A DNA stretch of 16,261 nt from Selaginella moellendorffii (GCF_000143415.4 NW_003314305.1:1-16261), one strand, 5' to 3'. Shown: positions 1 to 16,261, counted from the stretch's first letter. Numbers and translations: made by a program. Notes: generated by a model not told the origin, from the sequence alone.

Positions 1-436
1 AACCCTAAACCCTAAACCCTAAACCCTAAACCCTAAACCCTAAACCTAAACCCTAAACCCTAAACCCTAAACCCTAAACCCTAAACCTAAACCCTAAACC
101 TAAACCCTAAACCCTAAACCCTAAAACCCTAAACCCTAAACCCTAAACCCTAAACCCTAAACCCTAAAACCCTAAACCCTAAACCCTAAACCCTAAACCC
201 TAAACCCTAAACCCTAAACGCGCCTAAACCCTAAACCCTAAACCCTAAACCCTAAACCCTAAACCCTAAACCCTAAACCCTAAACCCTAAACCCTAAACC
301 CTAAACCCTAAACCCTAAACCCTAAAACCCTAAACCCTAAACCCTAAACCCTAAACCCTAAACCCTAAACCCTAAACCCTAAACCCTAAACCCTAAACCC
401 TAAACCCTAAACCCTAAACCCTAAACCCTAAACCCT
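1..436 (+). repeat. Terminal telomeric array, plant-type (CCCTAAA)n / (TTTAGGG)n
   Basis: About 60 tandem CCCTAAA units from base 1, with the C-rich strand on +, as expected at a left chromosome end. There are a few CCTAAA/CCCTAAAA variants and one CGCGCCTAAA variant (219-228). The junction to non-telomeric sequence is sharp, at ...AAACCCT|TCATC. Confidence 0.98.
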
Positions 437-479
437 TCATCATGTCCTAAGTGGCCATTGGTCCTTCGCAAAAAACCGG

Positions 480-702
480 ATTCGGTCTCGGACTCGATCT
501 CGGACTCGATCTCGGACCCGATCTCAGACCCGACCTCGAACTCGACCTTGGACTCGGTCTTGGACCCGATTTCGGATCTCGAACTCGGTCTCGAACTCGG
601 TCTCGAACTTGGTCCCCGAGTCAGCCTTGAACTCAATTTCGGACTCTATCTCGAACTCGGTCTCCGAGTCGATCTTGGACTCGATCTTCGACTTGGTCCC
701 AT
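480..702. repeat. Degenerate 6/12-mer minisatellite (consensus ~TCGGACTCGATC)
   Basis: Repeating TCGGACTCGATC / TCGAACTCGGTC / TTGGACTCGGTC units. These account for the low-complexity ORFs 421..636, 458..709 and 524..730. Confidence 0.85.
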
Positions 703-940
703 CCGATGAATTCTTTGTCAATTTGGTCATGCTTTCAGGGTTCCTTTAGCCTACGACACTTTGGCGAGTTGGTTCCTTACAGGCACTTGATGTGGGGAAC
801 ACCCTAAACAGGTGATTCTGAAGTTCTATCAAACTCACTCCCCAGAGTGATCACATGCTGGACACAGTCCCCAAACCTTGCCTCCCACTTGGTTTCAGCA
901 AGACTCCCACCATATGGATAAGCTACCTTGGACTTGTCCA

Positions 941-1263
941 AAGCTGCCTCTTGCAAACTCGGAGTGGAATATTCCTGGAATATTCTGATGCTTTGAAATA
1001 TTTTTTGAGGTTAGCTATTAAGCATGATGAGGAACAATTAGGACGTGCTGCATGGCTGATATCCATCACCATCACCATTCACAATATACTGCTATGAATA
1101 AGCTACCTCTTGCAAAGTCGGAGTGGAATATTCCTGGAATATTCTGATGCTTGGAAATAACTTTTGAGGTTGGCTATTAAACATGATAAGGAACAATTAG
1201 GACGTGCTGCATGGCTGATATCCATCACCATCACCGTCCACAATATACTGCTATGAATAAGCT
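941..1263. repeat. Tandem duplication, 159-bp unit x2
   Basis: AAGCT(G/A)CCTCTTGCAAA(C/G)TCGGAGTGGAATATTCC... starts at 941 and at 1100, and AAGCT recurs at 1259. The two copies are highly similar. Confidence 0.92.
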
Positions 1264-1295
1264 TCACACCACTAAGCTTGTTTATTTCCTATTTC

Positions 1296-1580
1296 AGTCT
1301 TTGAAATTTTCAACTTTTTTGAAATTTCAATTGATTATTATATCTTGTGCCTTGCACAGTGATGTCATTGAAGCTCACATCTATTCTCTACAAACCAAAT
1401 TTGAGGGAAATATACTGAGCTAATTAAAATCACCACCACCTATTCTCTGAAATTTTTCTGAAATTTCAAGGGACTATCACATCTTGTGCCTTGCACAAAG
1501 ATGTCATTAAAACTCATATTTTATTTTCTACAAACCAAAATTTGTAGAAAATAAACTCATAATAATAGCAATCAATACCA
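1296..1580. repeat. Older diverged tandem duplication, ~139-bp unit x2
   Basis: ATCTTGTGCCTTGCACA..GATGTCATT occurs at 1342 and 1481. TGAAATTTCAA and TCTACAAACCAAA are present in both copies. Boundaries are approximate. Confidence 0.8.
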
Positions 1581-1726
1581 CTATCATAATATATAAGATA
1601 AGTGGCTAGTGACAACCAAGTCTGTGAGGCTGTTCCTCCAAGCTTGCCTGCTCACCACAAGATCTTTGAAATTCTAAAACAGTTGGATATTTTCAAAGCT
1701 TCTTGAATATTCTTAAGGCATCTGGG

Positions 1727-1734
1727 TATAAATA
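1727..1734 (+). promoter_or_regulatory. TATA box upstream of the hammerhead (putative pseudo-LTR promoter)
   Basis: TATAAATA lies about 25 nt upstream of the CTGATGA core. Function is inferred from position only. Confidence 0.5.
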
Positions 1735-1747
1735 GAGGAAAAAGAGG

Positions 1748-1800
1748 GACTACACCCAGCTGATGAGTCCCAAAAAGGACGAAACCGGTCTCGGGTTGTC
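1748..1800 (+). ncRNA. Minimal type I hammerhead ribozyme (Penelope-like)
   Basis: Core CTGATGA at 1760-1766. Stem II is GTCC(1767-70)-CAAAAA-GGAC(1777-80), followed by GAAA 1781-84. Stem III is the palindrome ACCGGT 1784-89. The cleavage triplet is GTC, with a predicted cut after 1790. Stem I pairs GAC-tac-ACCC-AG with TC-GGGT-t-GTC (one G.U and one A-C mismatch next to the core). Confidence 0.9.
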
Positions 1801-1950
1801 ATGCCAATGTATTTCCTTTCTCTTTAGTGAATTTTTCATTATAAATTTTCTCTAGTTTTTCCTCTTATCTCAAATTGCCATAGCCGATCTCTAGCATTCT
1901 TGAGTTCCACTGGATCAAGCAATGTGGAGTGCTTTTGGCTAATCGCAATT

Positions 1951-2007
1951 CCACAAAACCCAAAACCCAAAACCCTAAAAACCGGTAAACCCTAAAAACC
2001 CTAAACC
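1951..2007 (+). repeat. Interstitial degenerate telomeric tract 1
   Basis: CCACAAAA CCCAAAA CCCAAAA CCCTAAAAA CCGGTAAA CCCTAAAAA CCCTAAA CC, in the same polarity as the terminal array. It abuts the truncated gag. Confidence 0.85.
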
Positions 2008-2008
2008 G

Positions 2009-2635
2009 GTTACCATATGTTGCTGCTGGAGCTGCAGCTGCAACATTCTGCGACGACATCCAGGCCTATTCCCATGTTGCTGCGTGCACCACTACTGCGT
2101 TCAAATCTGCTGGTCTCTGCACCTTCACGTGGAACCCGATCTCAAATGGCAACCCATTCAAGAACCAGCAAACTTGGTCGTCAGCAGTAGGCTGTGGATC
2201 TTTCCTCGCGAGCAGCCTCTTGTAGTGAAGAACGTAATTTTGCAATGTCTCTCCAAGTAACAATTGAATTGAATTTAGCTCGTCGCTGATACGCTACTTG
2301 AATCCCATAGGACAGAAAGCATTGAGAAATGCTGTTTTGAGGTCTGCCCAGGCTGCAAAGGCTGCTGCTGCATTCGCCTGACCATACCACTCTGCTGCTG
2401 CTCCCAGCAACGTCGCCGGAAACAAACAGACTCTCACAGCATCTGTCTGCTCCTGATTTGCTGTGCTGACATTTTCAAAAGCAGTTACGTGAGCGTCTAG
2501 ATTGTTAGTCTGTGTAAACGTTGGATACTTCATCCTCGCGTTGGCAGGCTGTGCCATTTGAGGATTTACTGCTTGAGGTGTGGGCGAGGCTGGTTCAAAT
2601 GGCCCCCACTTCTCCCAACTCAAACTTGAGTCCAA
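2009..2635 (-). pseudogene. gag: Ty3/Gypsy gag (Retrotrans_gag-like), two in-frame stops, 3'-truncated
   Basis: ORFs 2294..2635, 2066..2263 and 1865..2059 share one frame: KYPTF..LDAHVTAFE..LFPATLLGAAAEWY..WADLKTAFLNAF..GETLQNYVLHYKRL..WFLNGLP. The translation runs into telomeric repeats after AAPAATYGNR. Confidence 0.9.
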
Positions 2636-2880
2636 AGTCCTTGGACTAGTTTTAGGACTGGTTTCAAGCGAGTTCTATAACAGTCTCCTCGCTGCTTGTT
2701 CAGAACGGCCTCGATTCTGCTCTACCCTCCTAGTAGAAAAATCTAGAAAATTATCCCAGTCCGGGGATCTACCCGCCAGACCAAGAACCAACTGCGGCAA
2801 AGGATGCTTACTGCAGATGCCCGCAGATGACCAGCCTTTTCCTCAGGCCTGGTTTACTGCACAGTTACTGTGACTAAGCC

Positions 2881-2898
2881 CTCCCAGCTAACACACCA
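2881..2898 (-). promoter_or_regulatory. Primer-binding site of the minus-strand LTR element
   Basis: The minus strand reads ...CTTGACA TTTTT TGGTGTGTTAGCTGGGAG: LTR end CA, a T spacer, then an 18-mer starting TGG. The tRNA identity was not assigned. Confidence 0.7.
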
Positions 2899-2903
2899 AA
2901 AAA

Positions 2904-3554
2904 TGTCAAGAAAAATACATGACAACAAAGGAAGACTGGAAAGACTCCCCTAGGGCTTGTATTTCAGCAGTAACTACAGATCACTCGTACTGTGGGCCTG
3001 CAATAACTCTTCTATGATCACGGTGATGGGATCTCGACGGCCTATAGGAGGTCTACCATCTTCAAGCAGAAAGAACTCAAGAATATGAGATAGAAAATAA
3101 GAACTATAAAATAACTGAATGGCCGTACTTAATTTTCAAACTACCAAAAACTTAAACACCAACCAATGGCTGAGACTTTTCCAACTAATAACTCTTCATC
3201 CACAACTTCGATCGACTTGATTTTACCACCATGTAACTTCCCTTGATAAGATCTTCAACTTCATAGAAAACAACTTCTTCAAATTCTCACTTCTGAAATC
3301 TGTCACTTTTTCTCTCTCTAGTTAGAATATTCCTAGGAAGCTTCTTCAGCGAGCTTCTTCATTTTTCACCTTTTTCTAGCTCAGAAATACGTCAGTACTC
3401 ACAAAAGCAACCACAAGTGTGAAAATACAACCATATATACACTTATTGAGAGGGCGGTATGCCCAGTTTTTGTATTAGTCCCATTGGGACATGGGGAATG
3501 TACAAACACATTCAATGATCTCGCCAGATAACAGCACCGTGGGGTGTCTTTGAC
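2904..3554 (-). mobile_element. 5' LTR (~650 bp) of the minus-strand Ty3/Gypsy element
   Basis: Inverted termini TGTCAA(2904)...TTGAC(3554), with the expected terminal A replaced by telomeric C. It is adjacent to the PBS and has an internal minus-strand TATATA near 3434-3439. Confidence 0.78.
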
Positions 3555-3591
3555 CCTAAACACCTAAATGCGCCTAAACCCTAAGCCCTAA
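3554..3591 (+). repeat. Interstitial degenerate telomeric tract 2
   Basis: CCCTAAA CACCTAAA TGCGCCTAAA CCCTAAG CCCTAA, in the same polarity as the terminal array. Confidence 0.85.
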
Positions 3592-3719
3592 TGCAAATGA
3601 TTATGTTGTGGGTGGTGTTCTCATGCAAGATGATCATCCTATTGCATATGAGAGCAAGATATTTAACCCAATAGAGCAGTGATACTCTACATATGAAAAA
3701 GGAAGTGTTAGGAATTATA
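3590..3719 (+). pseudogene. Ty3/Gypsy RNase H fragment (chromovirus-like)
   Basis: Manual translation gives NANDYVVGGVLMQDDHPIAYESKIFNPIEQ*YSTYEK/EVLGII, which matches the DASxxAVGGVLxQ..PIAYES..L..AE.RY.TYEKELLAI motif. It starts immediately after telomeric tract 2. Confidence 0.88.
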
Positions 3720-3951
3720 AATTAAAGTGAGTTTTTTTAGCCACAACATAGTCATTTGCATCCACAACCACCATATATGGTTTGCTTGGATCCACAATTG
3801 GGTGCTTGAGATCAGTTACCCTTCCTAACCGCCCAGCATTTGCACTAGCACAAACATAAGTTCGTACAAAACTTTAAAAGAGAAAACTGCCTTTATCCCA
3901 TGTCCTATTTTAGTTCTCCATGCGTTTCACGATAGGGTTTCACTTAGCAAA

Positions 3952-4138
3952 ATGGAGAAGGTGCAGGCACGAATCGAGCTTCTTGAGCCACAGATCCAAG
4001 CGGCTGGGAAATCTTTTCTCTCTGCCCTTCAGAGTGGCAATCAATCTCTGGCGGAATATTGGCTGAAGGAGAAAGAGCGGCTGCAGAAGAAGGAAGAGCG
4101 GCTGTCGGAGGAAAAACTCGTCCTCCTCAGAAGTAATG
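3952..4138 (+). CDS. Exon 1 of the CR-like gene: alpha-helical/coiled-coil header
   Basis: AAAATGG start context, the peptide MEKVQARIELLE...EYWLKEKERLQKKEERLSEEKLVLL, and a canonical donor GTAAGT at 4139 (phase 1). Confidence 0.72.
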
Positions 4139-4514
4139 GTAAGTGATTTGGGGCGTTTTGCTGTGTTGTGGATATGTGTGGCTATGGCTGCTTTCCGTTC
4201 TAGTGGTCCAGTCCTAGTGCGCCATGAAAGTGGCAGATGTCAGCCATGATTTCGTCACTGTTGGATTTGGTCTTGCTTGTGGCTGGTTATTCACGGCAAT
4301 CTGTTTGGTATGGTATCATTAATCTTGCGTTCTACTAAGAGTTTCTCTCTGGGCCCCCTTGTTTGTTCCCTTGCAGCATGTAGATCTTCTGCTGCTTTTC
4401 TGTTGTCGTTTAAGCCAGATGTTTCTTGCGTTTCCTCTGCTTAAAATCCCCTCGCTTCTCACTGCAGACAGCCCTTGTGTCTTTTCGTTCATGTAACTAG
4501 CGATTTGTTTCCAG

Positions 4515-5704
4515 GTCCGTCTTTTGTTTTACCTGAGCTAACTTCGAGCGACATCGCAAGTTTGGATTGCTTTCTGGAGGGCAAGGCTGGCATACCCCAC
4601 TATCGTGACACGAATATTCCGCGATTTGGTGACAGGCCGAGCTTGTTGCTGCATGGCCTACTAGCACACGACACTGAAGACTTCGACAAGTTCGTGAGCA
4701 GGGGTAGCAGGTTTTTATTGGTGCCAGGAACAAGTGGAGCAGGAAAAACCAGGACTCTCTATGCTCACCTGGCGAAGAACTTCGGTTTTTACTTCATTTC
4801 CAATGACCTGGGGAATGGCGGGTCTGCAGACTTGAGGGAGGTGATTGGTATACTGGCAACGTATCTGGGCGCGGATCAAGTTAAGAACTATACTATAACT
4901 ACCTTTATGGTCACTGTGCTGCTGCTGGTCAGGATAGTGGTCTTCCACTACTGCAAAGGAAAGGATATAACTCCTGAGAAGTGGCTCATGTTACAGGTCG
5001 GGTGCCAGAGGCTGGAACAGGACAGGAAGCCATTGAACTTGGATCCTTTTGCTGCTTGCACTCGGCTGGCTCTCGGTAGATATGGGCCTGTCCTCCATGG
5101 CTCGTTAGTGGGGATTGCAGGTTTACTGGGTCAGGCCAAAATTGCCCTTTCAGAGTTGCTGGGAGGACAGCAGTTACCCCTGTTGGTAGTTGATGAGGCA
5201 CAGGAACTGGTTAAGCTGTATGCCGGAAAGTTCCGTACAGATCTTGAACCCTTCAAGGACCGACCATTGGCAAAGCCAGTGTTGGAAACTTTGCTCTACC
5301 CAGGCAACGAATCTCCAATTCATCATGTTGTATATGCTGGAACGGGCTTTCTTCTGAGCTTCAGCCGTTTGGAATCGAACAGCCCGGTGGGAAAACCGCT
5401 CGTCAAAGATGACGTGTACGAAGGTCTTGGTAGCTGGACAGATTGGAAGCAGATGGCAGCCTATTCCTGTTGTATTCTGGGGACAGCTTGGGATGCTGAA
5501 GCTCAGGAGACAGTGAAGAATGAGGTATTTCCCTATTTCAGGGGTCGGTTTCGCCCATTTGCGACATTGCTCGAGGAGGTGATTAGGAGGGGCAAGCACA
5601 TCCGATGGGTTTGGAACGACGTTTTTATAGGACTGACAGCTCGCCAAGGAATTCCAGGGATACAAAAGAGCTACTACAGGATTCTTGCAGAGGTAGCAAG
5701 GTAA
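4515..5704 (+). CDS. CR-type P-loop NTPase region
   Basis: An open frame of about 400 codons with Walker A GTSGAGKT, GSADL, Walker B VVDEAQ, YAGTG and GRFRPFA motifs. Confidence 0.85.
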
Positions 5705-6585
5705 CCGTGCAGTACTTCTACTTTGGGTGGTCATTCACGTGTCCAGTTTATGGTGATGAGCAGGAGAATGATTTACCTTCGACTCTTTTGGAGGTTGCCA
5801 TAGGAAGGGTCTACGGAAAGCAAATGGTTATAGTTGACGAGCCTCTTATGCTGGTGGCGATGCACAACTACTTTTTGGACGAAAAGAAGATCACCGGAAA
5901 TATGCTGGACACCCTTTATGCTCTGAACAATCCTTCCACAGGCAACTGGTGGGAGCATCTGTTTCCGCTGGAGATAAAGGATTTGTGGGAAAAGCACGAG
6001 GGGAAACTGGATCAGTTTGAGCTGTTTCATGATTTGGACCTGACACAGAATTTGGAGGCTTTGAAGAGCAAGAAGAGTCGTATTATGGAAGGCTCTATCT
6101 TTTACTTGGATGGGGCGCCAATGCCACCGGTGGTGATCTATAAGGCGGACAAAAACTACACTTGCCATGACTATTTGGCAAGTGATGTGCCTGGTTGCAT
6201 GTTTTTGGTGGCTGAGCATGCTGCAGGTTGTGACCTCATGTTCAGAATTCAGTTTGAGGACCATACCATCATATGGGTTAGTGTGCAACTCAAGCTGAGG
6301 AAGATCTTGTCCAATGCTTATGATGCTGTTTGCAAGGCAGAACCATCACCAAAATATGCTTGCAGGGGAGATATGTTGTGCCTGTTGGTTGCATATCCAG
6401 CATCACTGAACCATCCACCAGTGGAGAAACAGAAGATTGATGGGCAGACTAGATGTGTGGTTACAGTAGACAGGAAGAACGCCCGCAAGTTTATCTCAGT
6501 GGACCATTTGAAGAACCTTGATATTTTATCTGGTAAGAATAAAATACTAGTAAAAGTAATAAATAAAAGTAATGGTTTTACATAA
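5701..6585 (+). CDS. CR-type C-terminal region with restriction-endonuclease-fold (PD-(D/E)xK, QxK variant) domain
   Basis: IVDEPL, GNWWEHL, AGCDLMF and VSVQLKL motifs, in the order typical of CR NTPase-REase proteins. A possible further donor G|GTAAGA near 6533 precedes the AT-rich tail. Confidence 0.75.
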   Translation, partial: VTVQYFYFGWSFTCPVYGDEQENDLPSTLLEVAIGRVYGKQMVIVDEPLMLVAMHNYFLDEKKITGNMLDTLYALNNPSTGNWWEHLFPLEIKDLWEKHEGKLDQFELFHDLDLTQNLEALKSKKSRIMEGSIFYLDGAPMPPVVIYKADKNYTCHDYLASDVPGCMFLVAEHAAGCDLMFRIQFEDHTIIWVSVQLKLRKILSNAYDAVCKAEPSPKYACRGDMLCLLVAYPASLNHPPVEKQKIDGQTRCVVTVDRKNARKFISVDHLKNLDILSGKNKILVKVINKSNGFT

Positions 6586-7009
6586 TTAGAATAAACTTCG
6601 GTGCTAAGCTGTTCTAATGTAATGTTTGTCCATATATAAAGGCAGTCAGATCTAGCTCAAAATATGATGCTGTTTGCAAGTCAGATCTAGACCAAAATAT
6701 GCTTGCAGGGGAGATATGTTGTGCCTGTTGGTTGCATATCCAGCATCACTGAACCATCCACCAGTGGAGAAACAGAAGATTGATGGGCAGACTAGATGTG
6801 TGGTTACAGTAGACAGGAAGAACGCCCGCAAGTTTATCTCAGTGGACCATTTGAAGAACCTTGATATTTTATCTGGTAAGAATAAAATACTAGTAAAAGT
6901 AATAAATAAAAGTAATGGTTTTACATAATTAGAATAAACTTCGGTGCTAAGCTGTTCTAATGTAATGTTTGTCCATAACTTTAATAATATAAAGGCAGTC
7001 AGATCTAGC
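6348..7009. repeat. Near-identical tandem duplication of the CR gene 3' end (offset 343 bp)
   Basis: ACCAAAATATGCTTGCAGGGG...GGCAGTCAGATCTAGC occurs at 6348-6656 and 6691-7009. Copy 2 has an extra ACTTTAATAA. A 34-bp filler lies at 6657-6690. Confidence 0.95.
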
Positions 7010-7109
7010 CAATGGCATGTTGTTGTTATGGGAAAAGAAGGAAATTTATTGTTGGCTCCTACCAAAATAATGTTTAGGGATAATGTTTTGCTTACTTTTC
7101 TCAATTGCA

Positions 7110-7385
7110 TGGTCTCGGCCTTGGTCTCGGTCTTAGTCTCGGTCTCGGTCTTGGCCTCAGACTCCATTTCAATCTTGGCCTCAGTCTCGGCCTCGGACTC
7201 CATCTCAGGTCCATCTTAGACTCCATCTCGGGTTCATCTCGGGTCCATCTTAGATTCCATCTCGAACTCCATCTCGGGTCCATCTTAGGTCCATCTTAGA
7301 CTCCATCTCGGACTCCATCTGGGTCCATCTCAGACTCCATCTTTGACTCCATTTTAAGTCCATTTTGGACTCCATTTCAGACTCA
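7110..7385. repeat. Degenerate 6/12-mer minisatellite (GTCTCG then ~TCGGACTCCATC / TCGGGTCCATCT)
   Basis: Visible 6/12-bp periodicity. The unit is related to the 480-702 array. Confidence 0.85.
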
Positions 7386-7700
7386 TTTACTACTTGCTTC
7401 ATGCTCGTCCCTTGAGCTCTTCGTTGGGAATTTAACTCCCACTCTTGAATATCCAAGTCGGAGCTTTTAGTCCAAATGTGTTACACTCATTTGGTTTCCG
7501 CTTTAGCCACTACCACATGGCACCCTTTCTGCTCCACTTTAGGGCTTAGAGATTTGTGTCTCACAATAATCTTCTACTGATGGTAAGTAAATACTCAAAA
7601 GCTGTACACTTTATAGCATGAGGATGATGGGGAAGATCATTTCAATCTAAGGAAGAAGCTTTTGATTGTTGTTCGTGAACTCAATTGTGTGTAGAACAAG

Positions 7701-8345
7701 ATGGAGCTTGAGGACACTCATGCATTAATTTTAATGTTGGAAGGCATGTTTTGTGGTGGTTTAGTGTGGATATTACTAGATAGTGGGAGCAATAATAACT
7801 TTGTTTCAACAAAGTTTGTTGAGGAGCACAATCTAGTGACACGAGGAATTCTGCCATACAATAGTGGAAGGTGCTACTACCCTTGCTTAGCATTTTGATG
7901 CTTGTGTAGAGGGGTTGGAAGAGTTGGTTAGTAAAACCATACTTGTGAAGATTTTTTATCTCATATCCATTGTGTGGATCTTATTCTTGGGATGCCATGG
8001 TTGGTGAAGGTGGATCTAAAGATAAAGTGGAGTATTAAGCATGTCTCACTAATACAATAGCATTAAAGATGTGTGGTTAAGAGAGGGAATTTAGCCTATA
8101 GTTGTTATACTCTTCACTACATCTTTGAAGTGGGCTTATCATAATGAAAAAGCACTTTCTAGTTACTTGCTTTTTGTTTGTGACTTGGGGAATCAAGGTA
8201 CGTGTGGGGGAGAGGCAATCATATGGGTTGTAATTAAAGAGTTTTTTGATGCTTTTCCGCTAAACTTCTTTATAGGTTGCCTTCATGACAAGGTGTGGAG
8301 CATGGGATTAAGGTATAGCCAAAGACACAACCAATTTAGCAACAT
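7701..8345 (+). pseudogene. Decayed Ty3/Gypsy (chromovirus-like) aspartic protease and pre-RT linker
   Basis: ILLDSGSNNNFVS (~7770-7808), DLILGMPWLVKVDLKIKW (~7977-8030), IKEFFDAFP and GVEHGI, with many stops and frameshifts. Confidence 0.85.
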
Positions 8346-9562
8346 TCATTTCAGTTGAGTTATGTGGAGGACCAAGAAGTTTAACCATTAAAGGCTCTCT
8401 TATTAAGTAAATTGCCCTCTTTTCAGTTGGTTTAAAGGGAGATAAATAGGGTGCACTACATGAGCGTGGACCATATTTGAGCTCATGAGTTGAAGAGTTG
8501 AGTTCATGAGTTAGGCTCAAGTTTCAATTGTAGTTTAATACAAACATTAAAAACTTTAAAATATTAAGGTTATGGCAAACTTAATAATTTCATAACTCTC
8601 TATATATTCTCTAGATAAAAATGTTCTAAAGAACACTTCTTATTCTAATAATTTAAATATTTATTATTAATATTCTAACATATTCTAATGTTCTAACACA
8701 ATTTTAATATTCTAACACATTATTATTCTAAATATTTACTATATGCCATAATAGGGATATTTATTAGAACATAAAATAAGATGTTTTAGAAAAAGTATTC
8801 TTGTCACTTCCTTAAATCTGTACTCTATGCTTTCTGACTAGTAAATGTCAAGTTTGTCAGAATTAAAAAATTATTAAATTTGAAATAAGATTCTATGTAA
8901 GGCCATATAACCGTTTGAAAGGAAAAAAGATAACCATTGATATAAGCTTATTACATATAAAAGAAAGGCTTAGTTCTTTTCTAGAATACACTTTTGAGGG
9001 GTTTGTCATAACATACTATTTAGAATTTATGGATCTTCATTCACATTCTCATTCAAAAAGAGGGAAATACACATAAATGTTTATGGGTTCTAATGTTGGT
9101 AATTTTCACTCTCACAATCTTTCTTCCCAGGGTTTAAGGGCTAGAAGATGCAATAACTATCCCATTGCATAGTATAACCAAACCATACAAGAGAATGAAA
9201 GAGAGGATAATGAAGATAGTGATCATGAGTTGGCTCGCTTACTTGTTTCTACAATTTTGTAACTTTCAAGAAATGCCCTATATATTTTGTAGCCTTTAGT
9301 GGAAACAATGGCGATGATTAGTACAATGGTATATATGCTCTCGCGATACACTGCAACATCACGCACCTGAAAGACTACCATAAAATATTTTTTGAGATGG
9401 TAAAGACAAAAATGGAGATACACGAGTAATTATGGGCAGTATTGCAAAAAGAACACTCGCAAGTATATAAAATAAAAAGTGAATAATTTTTTTTATTAAT
9501 TATATAAATTATAATAAGTTTATATTATTGATAGAGAATAAATATCGATAGTGTTGGAAAAT

Positions 9563-10950
9563 CTAGTTAACTCCAAAAGTTTTTTGCAACTCAGCAATAG
9601 AAAGGCTTGCTTGGTGTATATAAATATTCACTTTAGAATCTTGGTGCAAGATGTTGATGAAGATGTAGTACATATACTTGCAAGGAGTATATGCCTTCCC
9701 ATGTTCCCCACGCTTCATAAAGTTTAAACATATGTAAGAAGGAAGGTCTTGAATGGCAATTATATACTCTCCACCTTCTATTTTGACTATGTACTCCTTT
9801 GCAAACATAGTGATGTACTTTGTGGAGAGAATCTCACACTCAAGTGTTTAAGCTAAATTTGTTTTACCTTGCTTCTTCTTTAAGACAATACAAATAAATT
9901 TAACTACCTTACCTTTTCTTGCTAGCCTCTTGTGCATCTCTATAAGAATAATTCTAATTCTGTCACTTATGTCTCCAACTCTCCTCTCAAGATTGAAACT
10001 AGATTTCTCAAAGTTTTCAATCTTATCTAAGGTGAGCATAAACCCATTAGCAACTGGCCATTCTTTAGGTACTACATCAAATTTAGTCACTATAGTGTTT
10101 TCAAGTTGCTTCATATAGTTAGCATCGGTGTTGCAACAATACAACCAACACCATCTTGAAAATCCTTCTTGCTTTCATTCCCCATAGAAACATGGGGTTA
10201 GAATAGAAGCAGATTTGTCACTACAAATCCAAGCCCAACACTTGCCCCTTAAAAGCATCCCCACATATCTTACATTTGATTTTGCTGGCATGCATCAGAT
10301 TGCCCATTACTTTGGCTCCATGCTATGGTAACTAATTTCAACTTATTGTGATGCACTCTCTTCATCAGCCACTTGAGGTGGCTCAGTCCAAGAACGGTGT
10401 CTTGGAGTAGAATGGTACTCAAAATCAAGACTGTGAGAACTTTGCTCCAAGGTCTGTACCAACATTTTCACAAGTAAAGGAAAAATAATGCTTTGAGCAA
10501 ACAATCTTCATATCACCAATAGAAGCCCGAGGAGTGTACTCCATAGATGTGCCACGAATCACTTCCTCAATTTTAGTTGCCATTGTTTGGGCGGGTAGAG
10601 TTAACTTTCTTTTCATCCTATCATATAACATTAGAAAAGTACATACATTTTTGCATTGTGATTTTCGCACAAAGGCATTTCCTGAGTCAGGAATTGAGAT
10701 TAGGATTACTTCCAGTCTAAATTCCTGATTTGGATGATTGGGCATGTAGTGGTTATATAGGCTGGTGATAGCATGCCAGACCTATCCCCTTTCTGTTTTT
10801 TTATATCCTTGGCCATAATAACATACACTCCACTTGCTCAACATTTACTCTTCCCTTCCATGCCTATCTTACTCACTGCCTTCTAGGGATCAAGGCTGTG
10901 AGATGTGCAACAATCTCAGCTTCAACATCTTTGCAACAGCACATGGCTAA
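9563..10950 (-). pseudogene. Decayed SWIM zinc-finger gene, probably transposon-derived
   Basis: YIIAIQDLPSYICLNF..PCKYMYYIF..IHQASLS resembles a degenerate SWIM (PSCxCxDF..CKH). Upstream are Cys/Trp-rich blocks (TPCFYG, WLYCC, WPVANG.LT). The gene is fragmented over several frames and the upstream boundary is approximate. Confidence 0.6.
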
Positions 10951-11039
10951 GTATTTCTTTCCTTTTTATGTTTAGATCTAGTTTAAATTAAAGAGGATTC
11001 ACAAGATCATTGTAGAGGTGATTTTGTAGTTTTCCACTT

Positions 11040-11056
11040 TGGCGACCACGGTGGGA
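11040..11056 (+). promoter_or_regulatory. Primer-binding site, probably tRNA-Arg
   Basis: TGGCGACCACGGTGGGA lies 3 nt after ...CCA. From memory it resembles the complement of plant tRNA-Arg 3' ends; this was not checked. Confidence 0.78.
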
Positions 11057-11602
11057 TAGGCAAAGTGAAGAGCACCCAAAGAACAAATACTAGAAGCCTT
11101 AGCCACAACTAAAAGAAGAAGCCGAAGTCAAGAATCAAGGGAAAAGTCAAAAAGAGACAAAAAGAAGAAAATCGACAAAAATCTACAGCAAGAAGCATGG
11201 CAATCATGCTAGAGACCAAGCACTTCAAGACTACGATCATCTAGTGATCGCCCACTTCTCAGAAAGTCCAAGCATCTTCCATAACTACCTCTTGGCGAGA
11301 GGTTGAAGACGAAGAATATTCTGCGCATCAGAATATTTGAAGAATCTCCGACAAGAAATCAGAGCAAGCAAGTGTTAACGAGCATGAAAACATGAAGAAC
11401 ACTTGAAAATTGAAGCCATGGAAAACTTGGAGTGTGAGTTTAATCGTTTTTAACGAGAGGTTGAAAAAAACAAATATATCAAGAATCTACAATAAGGAAA
11501 CGACCAAAGAAAAATTCCAGCAACTGACAATGGAGGATGAATGAAAAAGCACGACTACCCATTTAGAGACACAAACTATACAAGATATGGATTGCCTTTT
11601 GT

Positions 11603-12673
11603 GTGGTTTCAGAAATTGTGCAAAACCATACAAGCAATGCTATCCAAAATGGCACTTGCAAGCAAGTGAAAGCAAGACTCCGAATCAGGGATGAATATGC
11701 CACAGTAGAAGAGAAAAAAGAACGAAAAGAAATAGCCCAAGAAAACAACACCAAAAAGAATAATGATAGTTTGGAAAAAGAAGAAAAACAAAGCTTTGGT
11801 TGCTTTCAAAAACTTCAAGAAACACTTTTGCGACTCTTTTACAAATTGTCTAGCAAATAGGAAGAATGTGAAAATGAGGAAATGTTGAAAGAAAAACATG
11901 TTTACTTTGATTTCTTTGCAACTCGAAGAACCCTGACTTGGGTGTATCGTGGACACATCTTTCAACAAACAATTATTGAATTCCTAGGCATACATAAACA
12001 TGAAACTTTTCAACTATTAACACTTGTTTTCAACACTGATTTGATGAGGGTTTTAGCAGCAACAGAGTGTGGAACCTTTGAACCACAAGTTCGTTGGTTT
12101 GTTGACACACTTAAATTTAGAGATTTTGAAGAGAATGCAAAATTACTTTATCTACTTCTTCAAAGTCCTCTGGGTGTAACACTACCAACAAGCACTCTTA
12201 ACGAACTATATACTATAGCATATTGGCATTGTTTAGGACAGATAAGAATAGCTGGAGAATTAAGGAATCAAGAACAAGGCAATCAACAAATTCGAATTGG
12301 GAATTTGAGTTCAAGAAACCGACGGGAACCTGAACTTGTGACAAGTTCAAGGGAACATCTTGAAAGCTCAAGGATTACAAATCGAAGGAGGAGAAATTCA
12401 AGACGGAATCACAATGGGCCAAGATTAAATACAGTAACAAACTTCAACTTTGACACGGAGGTCCAACATCGAAACCCCAGCTTAGAAATACATATCACTC
12501 GCAATCAACAAGGGAGAGTGCGTCCAAGGAGTCTCAACATTTTAAGGAGTATTTTAGGAGATCTTGTGTCAAAATTACAAACTTATAATGCAAGAATATT
12601 AATTGAGACTATACCTTGGGAAGTTCGTGAAGCGATTGACTCTGATCATGGAAGAGAACGTGCTATACGATAG
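11603..12673 (+). pseudogene. Extra ORF of unknown function between PBS and gag
   Basis: ORFs 11603..11860 and 11882..12673 are in one frame separated by a single TAG, and the frame continues past the TAG at 12673. The order is a charged N-terminal part, a globular hydrophobic core and an Arg-rich tail. Confidence 0.6.
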
Positions 12674-13248
12674 AGGGAAGTAGAACAAGACCGGCAAGAA
12701 CGGCCTCAGGGAAATGCACCATCACGACATCGACCATAGAGAAAAGCGCACTGGATAGATTTGCGCACACATAAGCTTACAGCAACAAGAATCTGTTAGA
12801 ATCCATACTTTGACGTGTGGACGTCACTTGAGACAAGAAACATACGAGAATTAGGACATTAAAAATACAACCACTGCTGTATTCAGCATCTTCAAATCTT
12901 ACCAACGACTAGGAAGCACAAAAGCTCATAGTGAGAGCTTGCATTCCAAAACAACCAACACATTGTAAGAGATTAAAACAATTGTTCAAGATTGGACTAC
13001 TAAAAAGAATTGCAATCGTTTGCATACCTACTCGATCCCAAAGTTGGCGAGCAGTAACCAAATTTACTAGTGAACAGCTAAATCGATCAATTTATGACAA
13101 AACAGACCTCCTTCCAACAAACAAAATCGTGCTTACTTACACCATCAGATTTTTCAAATACAAGACCTTACTTGAGCTAGACTCAGGAAAGTGATCTCGA
13201 GGCGAAACTCGGGAAGAATCAAGAAAGAAAACAAAAAAAAACTCGATT

Positions 13249-13333
13249 GAAGACTCAAGACACAAGAGCTTGACTTCACATTTAAACTACAAAACCAAAC
13301 TTGCAGAAGACTCAAGACACAAGAGCTTAACTT
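13249..13333. repeat. Short direct repeat (28 bp, offset 57 bp)
   Basis: GAAGACTCAAGACACAAGAGCTT(G/A)ACTT occurs at 13249 and 13306. Confidence 0.85.
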
Positions 13334-13765
13334 TGCAATTTATGAAGAACAACAATTAACTCAAGATAACGTAGGCAAAACACAAATTCAAGAAACTTAC
13401 CTCAACACTCAAGTTGAGAAGACTCAGCAAATTGAATGTACAAATAGAAACCAGACCCAATCAAGATCCGGGAAAGAGATCTTTGACAAAAGAATCGAGA
13501 AGTGAAAAAGGAAGAGGTAGTAAAAGAGAAATTATAACAACAACAGCAACAAATTTTAGAAACAATTTTAAACAAGTACGACAAAGAAGATAAAAAAATT
13601 CAAGTTGCCGAGTCGAGCAAACCAGTCAAAGATAACAAAGAACTGAATATCGAAGACGCCCCAGAGTTTGAGGCATTCGAAGAAGCAGAATACACAGCAC
13701 CAGAGTTTTACTCAAATCCGGACTCACCAGAACAACAACTCAACCAACAAAGTTTACAACCACCT

Positions 13766-14983
13766 ATGGCAATCATCAACCCGATGAAAACAATTGGAAG
13801 CATGATTACATATCCAATTTTCATAGGAAGTAAGTCAGAAGATTCAGAATTACATGTAAAGCAATTCAACCAAATTGTCAAGATGAACAATCAAGAACAA
13901 CACTAGCCATACTTTTCCCATACACACTTAAAGGAAAAGCTCTTGAGTGGTATCATACACTAGAGGATTCTGTACCACATGATGACAAAATTAAACAATT
14001 CAAAGAACAATTCCTAGCCGAAGGAACACTGGAGGAGCATTATGAGCAAATTAAAAATATAAAACAGCGACCAAAGGAAGGAATTCAAAACTATACTAGA
14101 CGATTCAAATTACATACAAAGAAATGTAAAGATCTCATCACCGACAAAGGCAAGAGTTTGTCTTATATACAAAGATTACGAGAAGCCTATGGCAACATGA
14201 TCGCATTGGCTGATACACCTGATGAAGAAAGTGTTGATTCACTATCTCAAGGAATCTTAAAACTTGAGAAATGGTTTAAGCAGTTCACTAAAGGTGAATC
14301 TTCTCATGTTAATGATGACTCAGATGATGAAGAGGAGGAAATACTAATCAAGACCAAAAAGAAATAGACATAGGGAAAAGACATTAGACATGTATTGAAG
14401 AAGTTAGCTTCAACAGAACTTAAACAAGGAGTCTTTTGTACAAAATGCAAAAATGAAGGACATTCTGTTTCAGATTGTAAATTCCAATTACCCAAATGTC
14501 AGATTTGTGATAGAGAAGGACATATAGCCAAGAATTATCGATATAGAAATACCACTGAAGTTTCAAGAGTGGAAAATGTTCAACGAGGAACACCACGACA
14601 AAATTATCAAGGAAACAACAACCAAGAACAAAGACCACCAAGAAATTATTACTACCAAGATAATCAACAATATAATCAAGGATATAATTGTGGATATAAT
14701 TCCCCACAAAATCAAAACTATAGTTAAGGACAAAATGATTATAGAGGCAATTACAATCAACAACGATATAATGGACACCAAAACAATTATCAACATCCAC
14801 AAGGGAACAACTACAACCAAAACCAACAAAGGCAATATAACAATTACAACAATCAAGCATCGCAACAAAATTATCAACCAAGACAAAATCAACCACAAGA
14901 AAATCAAATTCAACAACAATACAATCCACAAAACCAAAGAATCAATCAAGATCCTACTGGAAGACCATCAGCAGCACGAGTAA
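13766..14983 (+). pseudogene. gag: gag with two CCHC zinc knuckles and N/Q/Y-rich tail
   Basis: YPIFIGSKSEDSELHVKQF..LKGKALEWY..IKQRPKEGIQNYTRRF, then CTKCKNEGHSVSDC (14437-14478) and CQICDREGHIAKNY (14497-14538, last Cys lost). Several stops and frameshifts are present, and the frame may extend upstream. Confidence 0.9.
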
Positions 14984-15469
14984 TTCAAGTAGAAGTTGAT
15001 GTAGAAGATGAAGCACAACTAAGGACTGAAGAACCAGAAGTTCTGGCAATCACAAGAACACAATATGAATGTCAACAACCTGATAAATATGGAGAACAAG
15101 ATGAAAGTGATCATGCATTAGAAATCAAGAATACCGAGTGGAAAAAGAGTAAGAAAATACTTAACACCATTCAACAAGAGCTTCAAAACAAAGATCCCAA
15201 AATTATTAATGATCAAATATACAATCAAGACGACCAAACTCAAGTATTAAGCTTTACTCAAGAAGAGCATACAACCATTGCCGAGCACATACTACATCAG
15301 GGAATTACTTTGACCTTACAACAAATATTGCAAATAGCACCATATATGAAAGACTAAATCTTAAAGATATGTACTTGAAGGATCCTTGAAGCTTGCACAC
15401 AAGAAAAACACCAATCTCAACCAGCACAACAAGAACAAGTTGAAAGAATCCAACCCGGTGATTATGATG

Positions 15470-15810
15470 ATAATGTACCTTGTATCAACGTACACATCGG
15501 CAAAAATCATATTGAAAGAGCTATCCTTGATGGAGGTTCTGGGGTTAATATCATCGAATATGCACTATGCAAAGCTTTAGGATTGGGCAATATACAAACT
15601 GCACCATTCAATGTACGCATGGCTGATCAAAGAGTTGTTAGACTAGCAGGCATCATCTGTGATGTCTCTATGACAGTAAAAAAGGACATAAATTTAAAGT
15701 TAACTTTGTTGTGTTAAAAATGCCAATTGAAGAATCTTCTTATGAAATCTTGTTAGGCAGACCTTGGCTTAACAAAGCTGTTTCTACACAGTATTGGATG
15801 GAACATGAGA
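15470..15810 (+). pseudogene. Retropepsin aspartic protease of the plus-strand element
   Basis: AILDGGSGVNII (~15520-15555), FNVRMADQRVV and, after a frameshift, YEILLGRPWL (~15741-15770). Confidence 0.9.
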
Positions 15811-16154
15811 TATGTATCCAATCCTAACAAGGACAAACTAAAATATCAACATTGACAAGTAAAAAAATCTCAAGAAGTTTCCGACCAACATAAGTTCAAG
15901 AATACAATTGGCAAGAAGGTTTAGACGATCTTGAAGAAGCTAAGTTATTTGAAGCATATTCTGAACTTAAGGCAATTCAAGAACTTGACCTCAACAAGAT
16001 ACTTCCTGTAACCAAGTGTCAAGACTATGAAGATTCAAAACAACCCAATTTAAAGAAGATACATACAACAAAAACCACCATACAAAAAGCAAGACTAGCG
16101 ATACAACCCAAACAATTACAAATTATAGAATATCACCTAGATATACAAAACGAA

Positions 16155-16206
16155 CCAGCACTCACTCACCATTCAAATTAGTGAGTGAATGGTGAGTGAG
16201 TGCTGG
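16155..16206. repeat. Perfect 21-bp inverted repeat with 10-nt loop
   Basis: CCAGCACTCACTCACCATTCA (16155-16175), loop AATTAGTGAG, then TGAATGGTGAGTGAGTGCTGG (16186-16206). Confidence 0.95.
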
Positions 16207-16261
16207 AATCATCGTCAATCTGCAAAAACGTATCTGGAGCACTATGAAATCCAAAAGCCCG

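Follow-up and report, generated by a model that had tools for sequence, protein, structure and literature searches.

The window analyzed here, a stretch of 16,261 nucleotides, comprises bases 1-16261 of Selaginella moellendorffii scaffold GL377609.1, so that base 1 is the scaffold end. Positions 1-436 (plus strand) hold the C-rich strand of a telomere, (AACCCTA)n, as identified by TRF, unit parsing and its place at the scaffold start; TRF counts 61.9 copies with 95% matches. The C-rich strand reads inward, as expected of a left chromosome end, and the CCCTAAA array ends sharply between 436 and 437, where the original prediction had placed its junction. Its approximately 62 units include three CCTAAA, three CCCTAAAA and one CGCGCCTAAA at 219-228; the variant GCGCCTAAA may be a recurrent product of telomerase or repair. 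Going inward from the chromosome end, annotation begins with SELMODRAFT_419778 (3952-6928, plus strand), an orphan gene of 689 aa with a weak AAA_22-type P-loop. A 343-bp tandem lies at 6348-6977; two 287-nt copies are 100% identical, and it may be an assembly stutter.

We searched the entire window for a 14-mer of two telomere units, allowing up to two mismatches, and compared the result with shuffled windows. Outside the terminal array, the 14-mer matched three times at 1959-1996 and twice at 3572-3592, all on the plus strand, and once at 7538 on the minus strand, versus 0.13 matches on average in shuffled windows; on this basis, we rejected a chance origin of the inner tracts. The three co-oriented tracts of the original prediction are thus present, both inner ones sharing the polarity of the terminal array, a co-orientation that by itself has a chance probability of 1/4. 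Both are short and degenerate: canonical CCCTAAA makes up one of approximately eight units in the outer one (tract 1) and one or two of five in the inner one (tract 2). At sharp junctions they meet, respectively, a truncated Ty3-type gag on the minus strand and a 128-nt Gypsy RNase H piece on the plus strand.

The window comes from the end of a draft scaffold, and the 6348-6977 tandem with its identical 287-nt copies lies nearby, as one might expect if telomere-containing Sanger reads had been chimerically joined at short tracts in the 2011 draft. However, the inner tracts, at 38-61 nt, are far shorter than a read and have unique flanks, so single reads should span them, and the junctions match meaningful biological breakpoints. 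We regard such an artefact as extremely improbable; the analysis supports a genuine S. moellendorffii chromosome tip, built by successive terminal events.

Between the present telomere and tract 1, a type-I hammerhead ribozyme was found at 1754-1796 on the plus strand (Rfam RF00163, 38.4 bits against a gathering score of 34, E = 1e-6). Cleavage is predicted after C1790. Helix III consists of 2 bp and a 2-nt loop in the palindrome ACCGGU, an architecture like that of the type-I motifs of S. moellendorffii Penelope-like elements (PLEs) (PMC4209133). By eye, the bases for the open helix III of a type-III fold do not pair. The hammerhead is preceded by a region (437-1753, plus strand) that tandem-repeat and ORF/Pfam analysis describes as the body of a 5′-truncated, non-coding terminal retroelement unit; it contains a 12-mer minisatellite (477-693), a 159-bp tandem (941-1263) and a 69-nt pair (1312-1380 and 1451-1519). 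Contiguity suggests that this body belongs to the same unit as the hammerhead and the C-rich tail that follows. A 154-nt spacer (1797-1950, plus strand) separates the two and forms a long imperfect hairpin within a 293-nt fold (z −3.2). No ORF longer than 105 aa and no Pfam domain were found in 437-1950. An 80-aa ORF of the unit had no match in a protein search, and two pattern scans of metagenomes for other copies were blank. The 12-mer minisatellites at 437-746 and 7105-7384 resemble each other merely through low complexity, and homology between them was rejected.

Gladyshev & Arkhipova 2007 and Arkhipova et al. 2017 are reportedly the primary papers on endonuclease-less telomeric PLEs. Endonuclease (EN)-deficient PLEs attach to G-overhangs via reverse-complement telomeric repeats beside a hammerhead, and their copies are 5′-truncated by telomeric repeats and arranged in chains that hold captured genes (PMC8557442, PMC6431247, PMC12477314). 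The unit at 437-2011 lies on the C-strand at the chromosome terminus, its 3′ end pointing inward and its truncated 5′ end (437) capped by telomere, which is the orientation that this attachment mechanism predicts. It resembles EN-deficient telomeric PLEs in its chromosome-tip position, with the sense strand on the C-strand (PMC8557442, PMC6431247, PMC4209133), in having reverse-complement telomeric repeats after a type-I hammerhead close to the 3′ end, and in a truncated, telomere-capped 5′ end with foreign sequence caught between units. It differs from them in several respects. No reverse transcriptase is encoded anywhere in the window, so the unit is at best a truncated or non-autonomous Penelope-like member. 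In the published Athena/Terminon elements the C-rich stretch is directly beside the hammerhead, whereas here it is 154 nt away and partly folded into a hairpin. Finally, what the unit apparently sits on is not telomere repeats but a broken, non-telomeric gene. Plant retrozymes, likewise non-coding plant retroelements with hammerheads, are non-autonomous LTR elements with type-III hammerheads in two LTRs (PMC5680766), while this unit, which lacks an LTR pair, carries one type-I motif and ends in a telomeric tail; with a single type-I hammerhead and no flanking pair of direct repeats, a plant retrozyme was rejected. By analogy in hammerhead, C-rich tail and position, 437-2011 is most likely a terminal unit of the endonuclease-less Penelope-like type already described from S. 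moellendorffii telomeres.

Tract 1, delimited by repeat search, TRF, folding and unit parsing, extends over 1951-2011 on the plus strand, ending at 2011 rather than at 2007 as first proposed. It places C-rich reverse-complement telomeric repeats on the sense strand of the unit at its 3′ end, 154 nt from the hammerhead. Three CCCAAAA-type units are followed by a hairpin of 7 bp (stems AACCGGT at 1980-1986 and ACCGGTT at 2005-2011) whose 18-nt loop contains two telomere-complement units; the fold has −8.2 kcal/mol, and its z-score of −2.5 is modest, as 2 of 200 shuffles fold equally well. The sequence AAACCGGT occurs three times in the window, all within 1782-2010 and thus in the hammerhead and tail only, versus 0.26 expected. 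CCCAAAA (three times) and CCGGT (twice) occur in tract 1, and neither is among the 62 units of 1-436. The final 10 nt before gag are non-telomeric, and telomerase-type units do not reach the break. Given the odd CCCAAAA units and the ACCGGT-stem hairpin with its telomere-complement units, we read tract 1 as most likely the hammerhead element's own templated 3′ docking tail, not a fossil made by telomerase. In that case, the element lies immediately against the broken gag.

The truncated Ty3-type gag, with its capsid domain, occupies 2012-2674 on the minus strand (Pfam Retrotrans_gag and remote homologues). Two pieces of it, 2297-2674 and 2069-2293, are of the Retrotrans_gag/Ty3-capsid type, and in-frame stops lie at 2294-2296 and 2066-2068. 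A search of 1.84 billion representatives returned 40 remote homologues (best 46% identity) and no close relatives, so that the end of homology was mapped by remote protein alignments alone. In tblastn, the homologue extents run from 2670 down to 2045, with ends ranging from 2045 to 2069. These homologues have Ty3_capsid and zf-CCHC domains, with zinc knuckles 100-300 residues beyond; the zinc knuckles are missing from the gag copy, which is cut approximately 100-300 codons short of their expected position. The original prediction that tract 1 abuts a broken gag holds as to the truncation and was corrected only in the end of the tract. Its further step, in which the gag break was healed by a telomere, has against it the tract 1 units unlike those of 1-436, the hairpin and the non-telomeric last 10 nt. 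That a tract might be a normal part of its element family had been foreseen as what would overturn the original reading; tract 1 most likely does belong to an element, namely the hammerhead element, not the gag element.

Upstream of gag, 2675-3553 (minus strand) is a non-coding region, possibly a leader with part of a 5′ LTR; it has no Pfam match and no repeat partner in the window. An LTR element had been proposed to have inserted into an older telomere at this point. The minus strand at 3553 begins with TCAAAG, not TG; no initiator-Met primer-binding site was found in 2600-3553 with up to three mismatches, initiator-Met being the only type sought; and neither a second LTR for the gag element in the window nor a target duplication at 3553 was found. 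The window contains no tRNA genes. The proposed insertion finds no support in these results.

Tract 2 (3554-3591, plus strand; repeat search and TRF) consists of five degenerate telomere units, in order CCCTAAA, CACCTAAA, TGCGCCTAAA, CCCTAAG and CCCTAA. A 15-nt variant, GCGCCTAAACCCTAA, is common to tract 2 and the present telomere (220-234). The tract abuts a Gypsy RNase H fragment, here called B (3591-3740, plus strand), that is recognized by Pfam and an inverted repeat: the plus-strand frame from 3590 matches RT_RNaseH positions 11-42 and RT_RNaseH_2 positions 37-67. The break between tract and RNase H (3591/3592) falls within the codon of the first catalytic Asp, where this Pfam frame starts, in agreement with the original prediction of a junction at the first catalytic motif. 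Fragment B has one in-frame stop, and its homology fades at approximately 3719 (approximately 128 nt), followed by approximately 21 nt. Beyond it lies fragment A (3741-3873, minus strand), a Gypsy RT/RNase H linker fragment by nucleotide match to B and translation. An inverted repeat of 21 nt, 95% complementary, has its arms at 3591-3611 and 3741-3761 around a 129-nt spacer, and fragment A ends in the same DANDYVV-coding 21 nt with which B starts. From this repeat and the continuity of the reading frame, A and B appear to be one contiguous pol region of approximately 280 nt in a fold-back arrangement. Fragment A alone has no Pfam and no PDB match; it is probably Gypsy pol, judging from its nucleotide match to B and from a P..D.SKP....DA motif, which we take to be that of Ty3/gypsy pol.

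The fold-back would fit an origin by inverted template switching or from a palindrome that broke close to its centre. Simple snap-back of a resected minus-strand tail was rejected: it predicts B antisense on the plus strand, where B in fact runs in sense orientation, contiguous with the arm. Fold-back inversions and breakage-fusion-bridge intermediates are a known chromosome-end system. The arrangement here resembles these in that inverted arms enclose a short spacer at a chromosome tip and were then capped by telomere, and differs in that 21 nt of the outer arm are left, too little to establish a long palindrome. In a separate reading, a telomere-primed Penelope-like reverse transcriptase, or template switching, may have copied foreign retroelement RNAs onto the tip, with telomerase repeats added between copies. 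Fragment B, which is sense on the C-strand and telomere-capped at its 5′ end, looks like a 5′-truncated cDNA, as such copying predicts. We think this very improbable; gag is antisense on the C-strand and would require an antisense RNA template, and the proximal end of B joins inverted A, not a telomere.

Broken-end healing by de novo telomere addition, McClintock's chromosome healing, leaves interstitial telomeric repeats. Tract 2 resembles such a product in its C-strand polarity and in lying against truncated sequence on the centromere side, and departs from it in having 38 degenerate nt only and in capping a fold-back, not a plain break. Tract 2 is plausibly what is left of a telomere that was added to a break, as position and polarity fit; it could instead be part of the region to its left (2675-3553), or filler. 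The original prediction of a Gypsy pol break healed by tract 2 therefore keeps its position and polarity, but what was capped is a fold-back of a short pol fragment, marked by the 21-nt inverted repeat.

The rare 15-nt variant shared by tract 2 and the present telomere hints at an exchange of telomeric tracts, and subtelomeres commonly exchange. A shortened end could have invaded an interstitial telomere-like tract and copied the donor's distal sequence in one step, by break-induced replication or subtelomere exchange, in which case the layers would record the history of another end, or tract 2 would be merely a recombination joint. No parts of 437-3553 are duplicated in the window, however, and the same layers must still have formed at the donor end; we consider this acquisition, its corollary included, quite improbable.

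The same polarity of all three tracts, and the truncated coding fragment on the centromere side of each inner one, could also mean that both inner tracts are fossils made by telomerase after the end had twice been broken and healed, with an LTR element entering the first and the hammerhead segment added to the second. Since PLEs are expected to dock on telomeric G-overhangs (PMC8557442), an old telomere between tail and gag would be natural. Against this, the units of tract 1 are unlike the telomerase product at 1-436, its hairpin stem motif is common to the hammerhead, and its last 10 nt before gag are non-telomeric; moreover, 3553 showed neither an LTR terminus nor a primer-binding site nor a target duplication, and the fold-back at 3591-3761 is left unexplained. 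Two fossil telomeres are therefore unlikely. The prediction that both inner tracts cap broken retroelement genes stands in that truncation is seen at both boundaries, whereas tract 1 is probably an element tail. By contrast, the analysis supports the proposed distal joining of the hammerhead segment and its later capping by the present telomere.

The history that we favor would run from the inside out, the order of events being inferred only from position. A short Gypsy pol remnant upstream of SELMODRAFT_419778 would have suffered an end-processing accident that left the fold-back, most simply if a broken or stalled end underwent an inverted template switch or folded back. The outer end of the fold-back, inside the RNase H Asp codon, would then have gained telomere repeats by healing, of which 38 degenerate nt remain as tract 2. 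Distal to tract 2, a 1.5-kb LTR-type piece (the upstream region and gag capsid domain, antisense to the C-strand) would have been joined, with a captured DNA fragment or some act of copying being as likely as insertion by integrase. The end would later have broken or eroded into gag, and an endonuclease-less Penelope-like element would have been reverse-transcribed onto it; the element RNA would have a type-I hammerhead followed, 154 nt further on, by a C-rich tail that offers two telomere-complement units in the loop of its hairpin. Tract 1 would be this tail, copied from RNA and meeting gag without clear telomerase-made repeats between them. Finally, the cDNA would have stopped at 437, the 5′ truncation, and telomerase would have made the present array. 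We judge this layered explanation as a whole (fold-back, healing at tract 2, joining of the gag piece, Penelope-like element tail and present array) somewhat better than an even bet. The three telomere-like layers would then be one living telomere and, probably, one fossil telomere and one element-encoded telomere mimic.

In Drosophila, HeT-A/TART retrotransposition heals terminal deficiencies. If tract 1 is wholly element-encoded, the tip resembles this system, which is listed in PMC5537684, in that a retroelement was copied straight onto a non-telomeric break; it differs in that the Drosophila element is a LINE and the one here Penelope-like, in that the host here is telomerase-active, and in being a single case. 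Only tentatively, and with the balance against it, do we propose that the locus preserves at base-pair resolution both a Penelope-like element copied onto a non-telomeric broken gag and a telomerase-healed fold-back intermediate of the breakage-fusion-bridge type. This is one unreplicated case, and most of it agrees with biology already published.

Penelope-like elements that attach to telomeres are related to telomerase and rare in plants, and Selaginella is the textbook plant case. In S. moellendorffii, caution is needed before short telomere-like tracts are taken for fossil telomeres, as they can be mimics that an element encodes. An element on a broken gene, beside a fold-back probably healed by telomerase, would show telomerase and a retroelement sharing end repair, and the layered tip would offer dated layers for the study of end erosion. 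If true, the tentative proposal would mean that a retroelement healed a chromosome in a telomerase-positive land plant, and one chromosome end would hold three different modes of tip repair.

The window corresponds to bases 1-16261 of scaffold GL377609.1 (1.63 Mb, assembly GCA_000143415.2), the very start of the scaffold. Tandem Repeats Finder identified (AACCCTA)n at 1-436 (61.9 copies, 95% matches) with the C-rich strand reading inward, as expected for a left chromosome end, and with a sharp boundary at 436/437. Variants among the 62 units of this living telomere were limited to CCTAAA, CCCTAAAA and one CGCGCCTAAA. We searched for a two-unit telomere 14-mer (<=2 mismatches) outside this terminal array and found matches at 1959-1996 (+) and 3572-3592 (+), with only one - strand site, at 7538, against 0.13 matches per window in shuffled sequence. 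The two inner tracts, tract 1 (1951-2011) and tract 2 (3554-3591), though short and degenerate, are therefore real and co-oriented with the telomere, as the original prediction had proposed; its observation as a whole was confirmed. Misassembly of this region is highly improbable, as a single read is far longer than either tract. The reverse-oriented site at 7538-7551 (TTTAGGGCTTAGAG on the + strand) has the TTAGGGCTTAG variant in common with the reverse complement of tract 2 and may be a chance match.

The segment between the living telomere and the first broken gene (437-2011) has the anatomy of a known kind of terminal retroelement, and it is by anatomy that we assign it. Using Rfam, we found a type-I hammerhead at 1754-1796 (+) (38.4 bits, gathering score 34, E 1e-6) and discounted a weaker match to a second hammerhead family in the same clan. 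Helix III of this hammerhead, with 2 base pairs and a loop of two bases, has the palindromic sequence ACCGGU; Cervera and De la Pena (PMC4209133) described type-I motifs of this kind, in which helix III is short and the loop palindromic. Telomeric Penelope-like elements that carry hammerheads dock on G-rich overhangs via short reverse-complement telomeric repeats beside the hammerhead, telomeric repeats truncate most copies at the 5' end, and captured genes are held within chains of copies (PMC8557442, PMC6431247, PMC12477314). Like the published elements, segment 437-2011 lies on the C-strand, carries a hammerhead near its 3' end, terminates inward in a C-rich tail, and has a cut-off 5' end capped by the living telomere. 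Unlike them, it lacks a reverse transcriptase, and is thus a truncated or non-autonomous unit; no ORF or domain was found in it. The 154 nt between hammerhead and tail (1797-1950) form a long imperfect hairpin within a predicted 293-nt fold (z -3.2), which may be part of the 3' structure of the element. The distal end of the unit is a CpG-rich minisatellite (477-693, CGGACTCGATCT type); a second one, also with 12-mer-based units and on the same strand, is present at 7105-7384 (CTCCATCTCGGG type), and the two have only a low-complexity resemblance.

Tract 1, originally read as a fossil telomere capping a broken gene, looks element-encoded. Its approximate units are CCACAAAA, CCCAAAA, CCCAAAA, CCCTAAAAA, CCGGTAAA, CCCTAAAAA, CCCTAAA and CCGGTT; CCCAAAA and CCGGT units together make up half of the tract and are absent from all 62 units of 1-436. 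The tract ends in a hairpin (-8.2 kcal/mol, z -2.5; equally good folds in 2 of 200 shuffles), in which AACCGGT (1980-1986) forms a stem with ACCGGTT (2005-2011) and closes an 18-nt loop comprising two telomere-complement units; the structured tract thus reaches 2011, four bases past the boundary first proposed. The 8-mer AAACCGGT occurs 3 times in the 16 kb, against 0.26 expected: once in the hammerhead's helix III and once in each stem of the tract 1 hairpin. A model in which telomerase made both inner tracts is unlikely, failing mainly on this composition and structure. If tract 1 is indeed the element's tail, no clear telomerase-made repeats lie between element and gag. The - strand junction reads ...ATATGGT followed by AACCGGT; in that case a broken, non-telomeric end would have received the element copy directly, perhaps via a few paired bases.

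The gene inward of tract 1 (within 2012-3553) is a - strand gag, of which 2297-2674 matches Retrotrans_gag in Pfam. This piece has 40 remote relatives among 1.84 billion representatives (best identity 46%), and their tblastn alignments to the window run from ~2670 down to 2045-2069 through two in-frame stops. Longer relatives have Ty3_capsid and, 100-300 residues past the aligned part, one to three zinc knuckles, whereas on the zinc-knuckle side the sequence here passes into tract 1. Pfam, tblastn and the relatives' architecture thus bear out that both genes are truly truncated, with cuts that coincide with the tracts or lie no more than about 35-60 nt away. Integrase-mediated insertion of the gag element into an older telomere, also part of the original prediction, found no support: the - strand at 3553 starts TCAAAG rather than TG, and we found no initiator-Met primer-binding site, no second LTR or other repeat partner in the window, and no target duplication. 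This 1.5-kb piece may have been captured as a DNA fragment by an uncapped end, copied in from another site, or inserted as an element that lost its end afterwards. An LTR-type retroelement of another family is present at 13834-15714 (+); it is AT-rich, with gag (Retrotrans_gag, Ty3_capsid), a zinc knuckle, a long Q/N-rich low-complexity stretch and a protease-like DGGSG motif.

Tract 2 (CCCTAAA, CACCTAAA, TGCGCCTAAA, CCCTAAG, CCCTAA) joins an RNase H piece, and the boundary falls within the codon for the first catalytic aspartate. Pfam aligns the + strand frame from 3590 with RT_RNaseH profile positions 11-42 and RT_RNaseH_2 37-67; this piece retains none of the RT, nor the portion of the domain upstream of the match. 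A repeat finder identified a pair of inverted 21-nt arms, 3591-3611 and 3741-3761, which are 95% complementary and separated by 129 nt. Fragment B, the + strand piece (3591-3740), begins with the left arm and reads ..ANDYVVGGVLMQ...; fragment A, on the - strand (3873 down to 3741), ends with the right arm and reads ...DPSKPYMVVVDANDYVV, a stretch that we take to be the sequence preceding the RNase H motif in Ty3/gypsy pol; fragment A alone had no Pfam or PDB match. Together they make up one contiguous pol region of ~280 nt, with B flipped and 21 nt present twice. Plain snap-back of a resected strand was rejected, since it predicts the opposite orientation of B. The fold-back could have arisen through an inverted template switch as the - strand was extended or, alternatively, from a palindrome cut near its centre; under both, telomere repeats would then have been added at the outer arm. 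Trans copying of foreign RNAs would suit fragment B but not the antisense gag, and is very doubtful. We still favour telomere addition at 3591 as the explanation of tract 2, as originally proposed, though the history is more complex than simple breakage and healing, the capped end being a fold-back. The odd living-telomere unit CGCGCCTAAA (within 219-234) and TGCGCCTAAA of tract 2 (within 3569-3584) have the rare 15-nt variant GCGCCTAAACCCTAA in common (220-234 and 3570-3584), and these two stretches hold the only occurrences of GCGCCTAAA in the window. This hints at exchange between tracts or at a product of repair or of telomerase that recurs. Gain of the distal block in one step from another chromosome end could involve such exchange; we regard it as quite improbable.

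The first gene inward of the end is SELMODRAFT_419778 (3952-6928, hypothetical protein), which was the single match (99% identical) of a 419-codon open frame at 4445-5701. It is an orphan: its one domain match, to an AAA_22-type P-loop, is weak, and the best 8000 candidates from 5.8 billion proteins searched included no homologue but itself. A 343-bp tandem duplication (6319-6977; 1.9 copies, 98%, 287 nt identical) spans its 3' end and downstream region, and is either recent or an assembly stutter. Farther inward, a near-perfect ~30 bp hairpin built on GTGAGTGA-type repeats (16141-16219) gave sub-threshold microRNA-precursor matches (25 bits; gathering scores 71-100) and is probably just an inverted repeat.

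Overall, the original interpretation is partly supported: the gene truncations stand and telomere addition remains the favoured reading of tract 2, composition and hairpin speak against tract 1 as a fossil telomere, and LTR insertion is unsupported. A telomere-associated Penelope-like system has already been published for S. moellendorffii, and this chromosome end adds a rather rich example of it. Two features most deserve attention: the fold-back that tract 2 caps, and the possibility that the element itself directly healed a broken gene.
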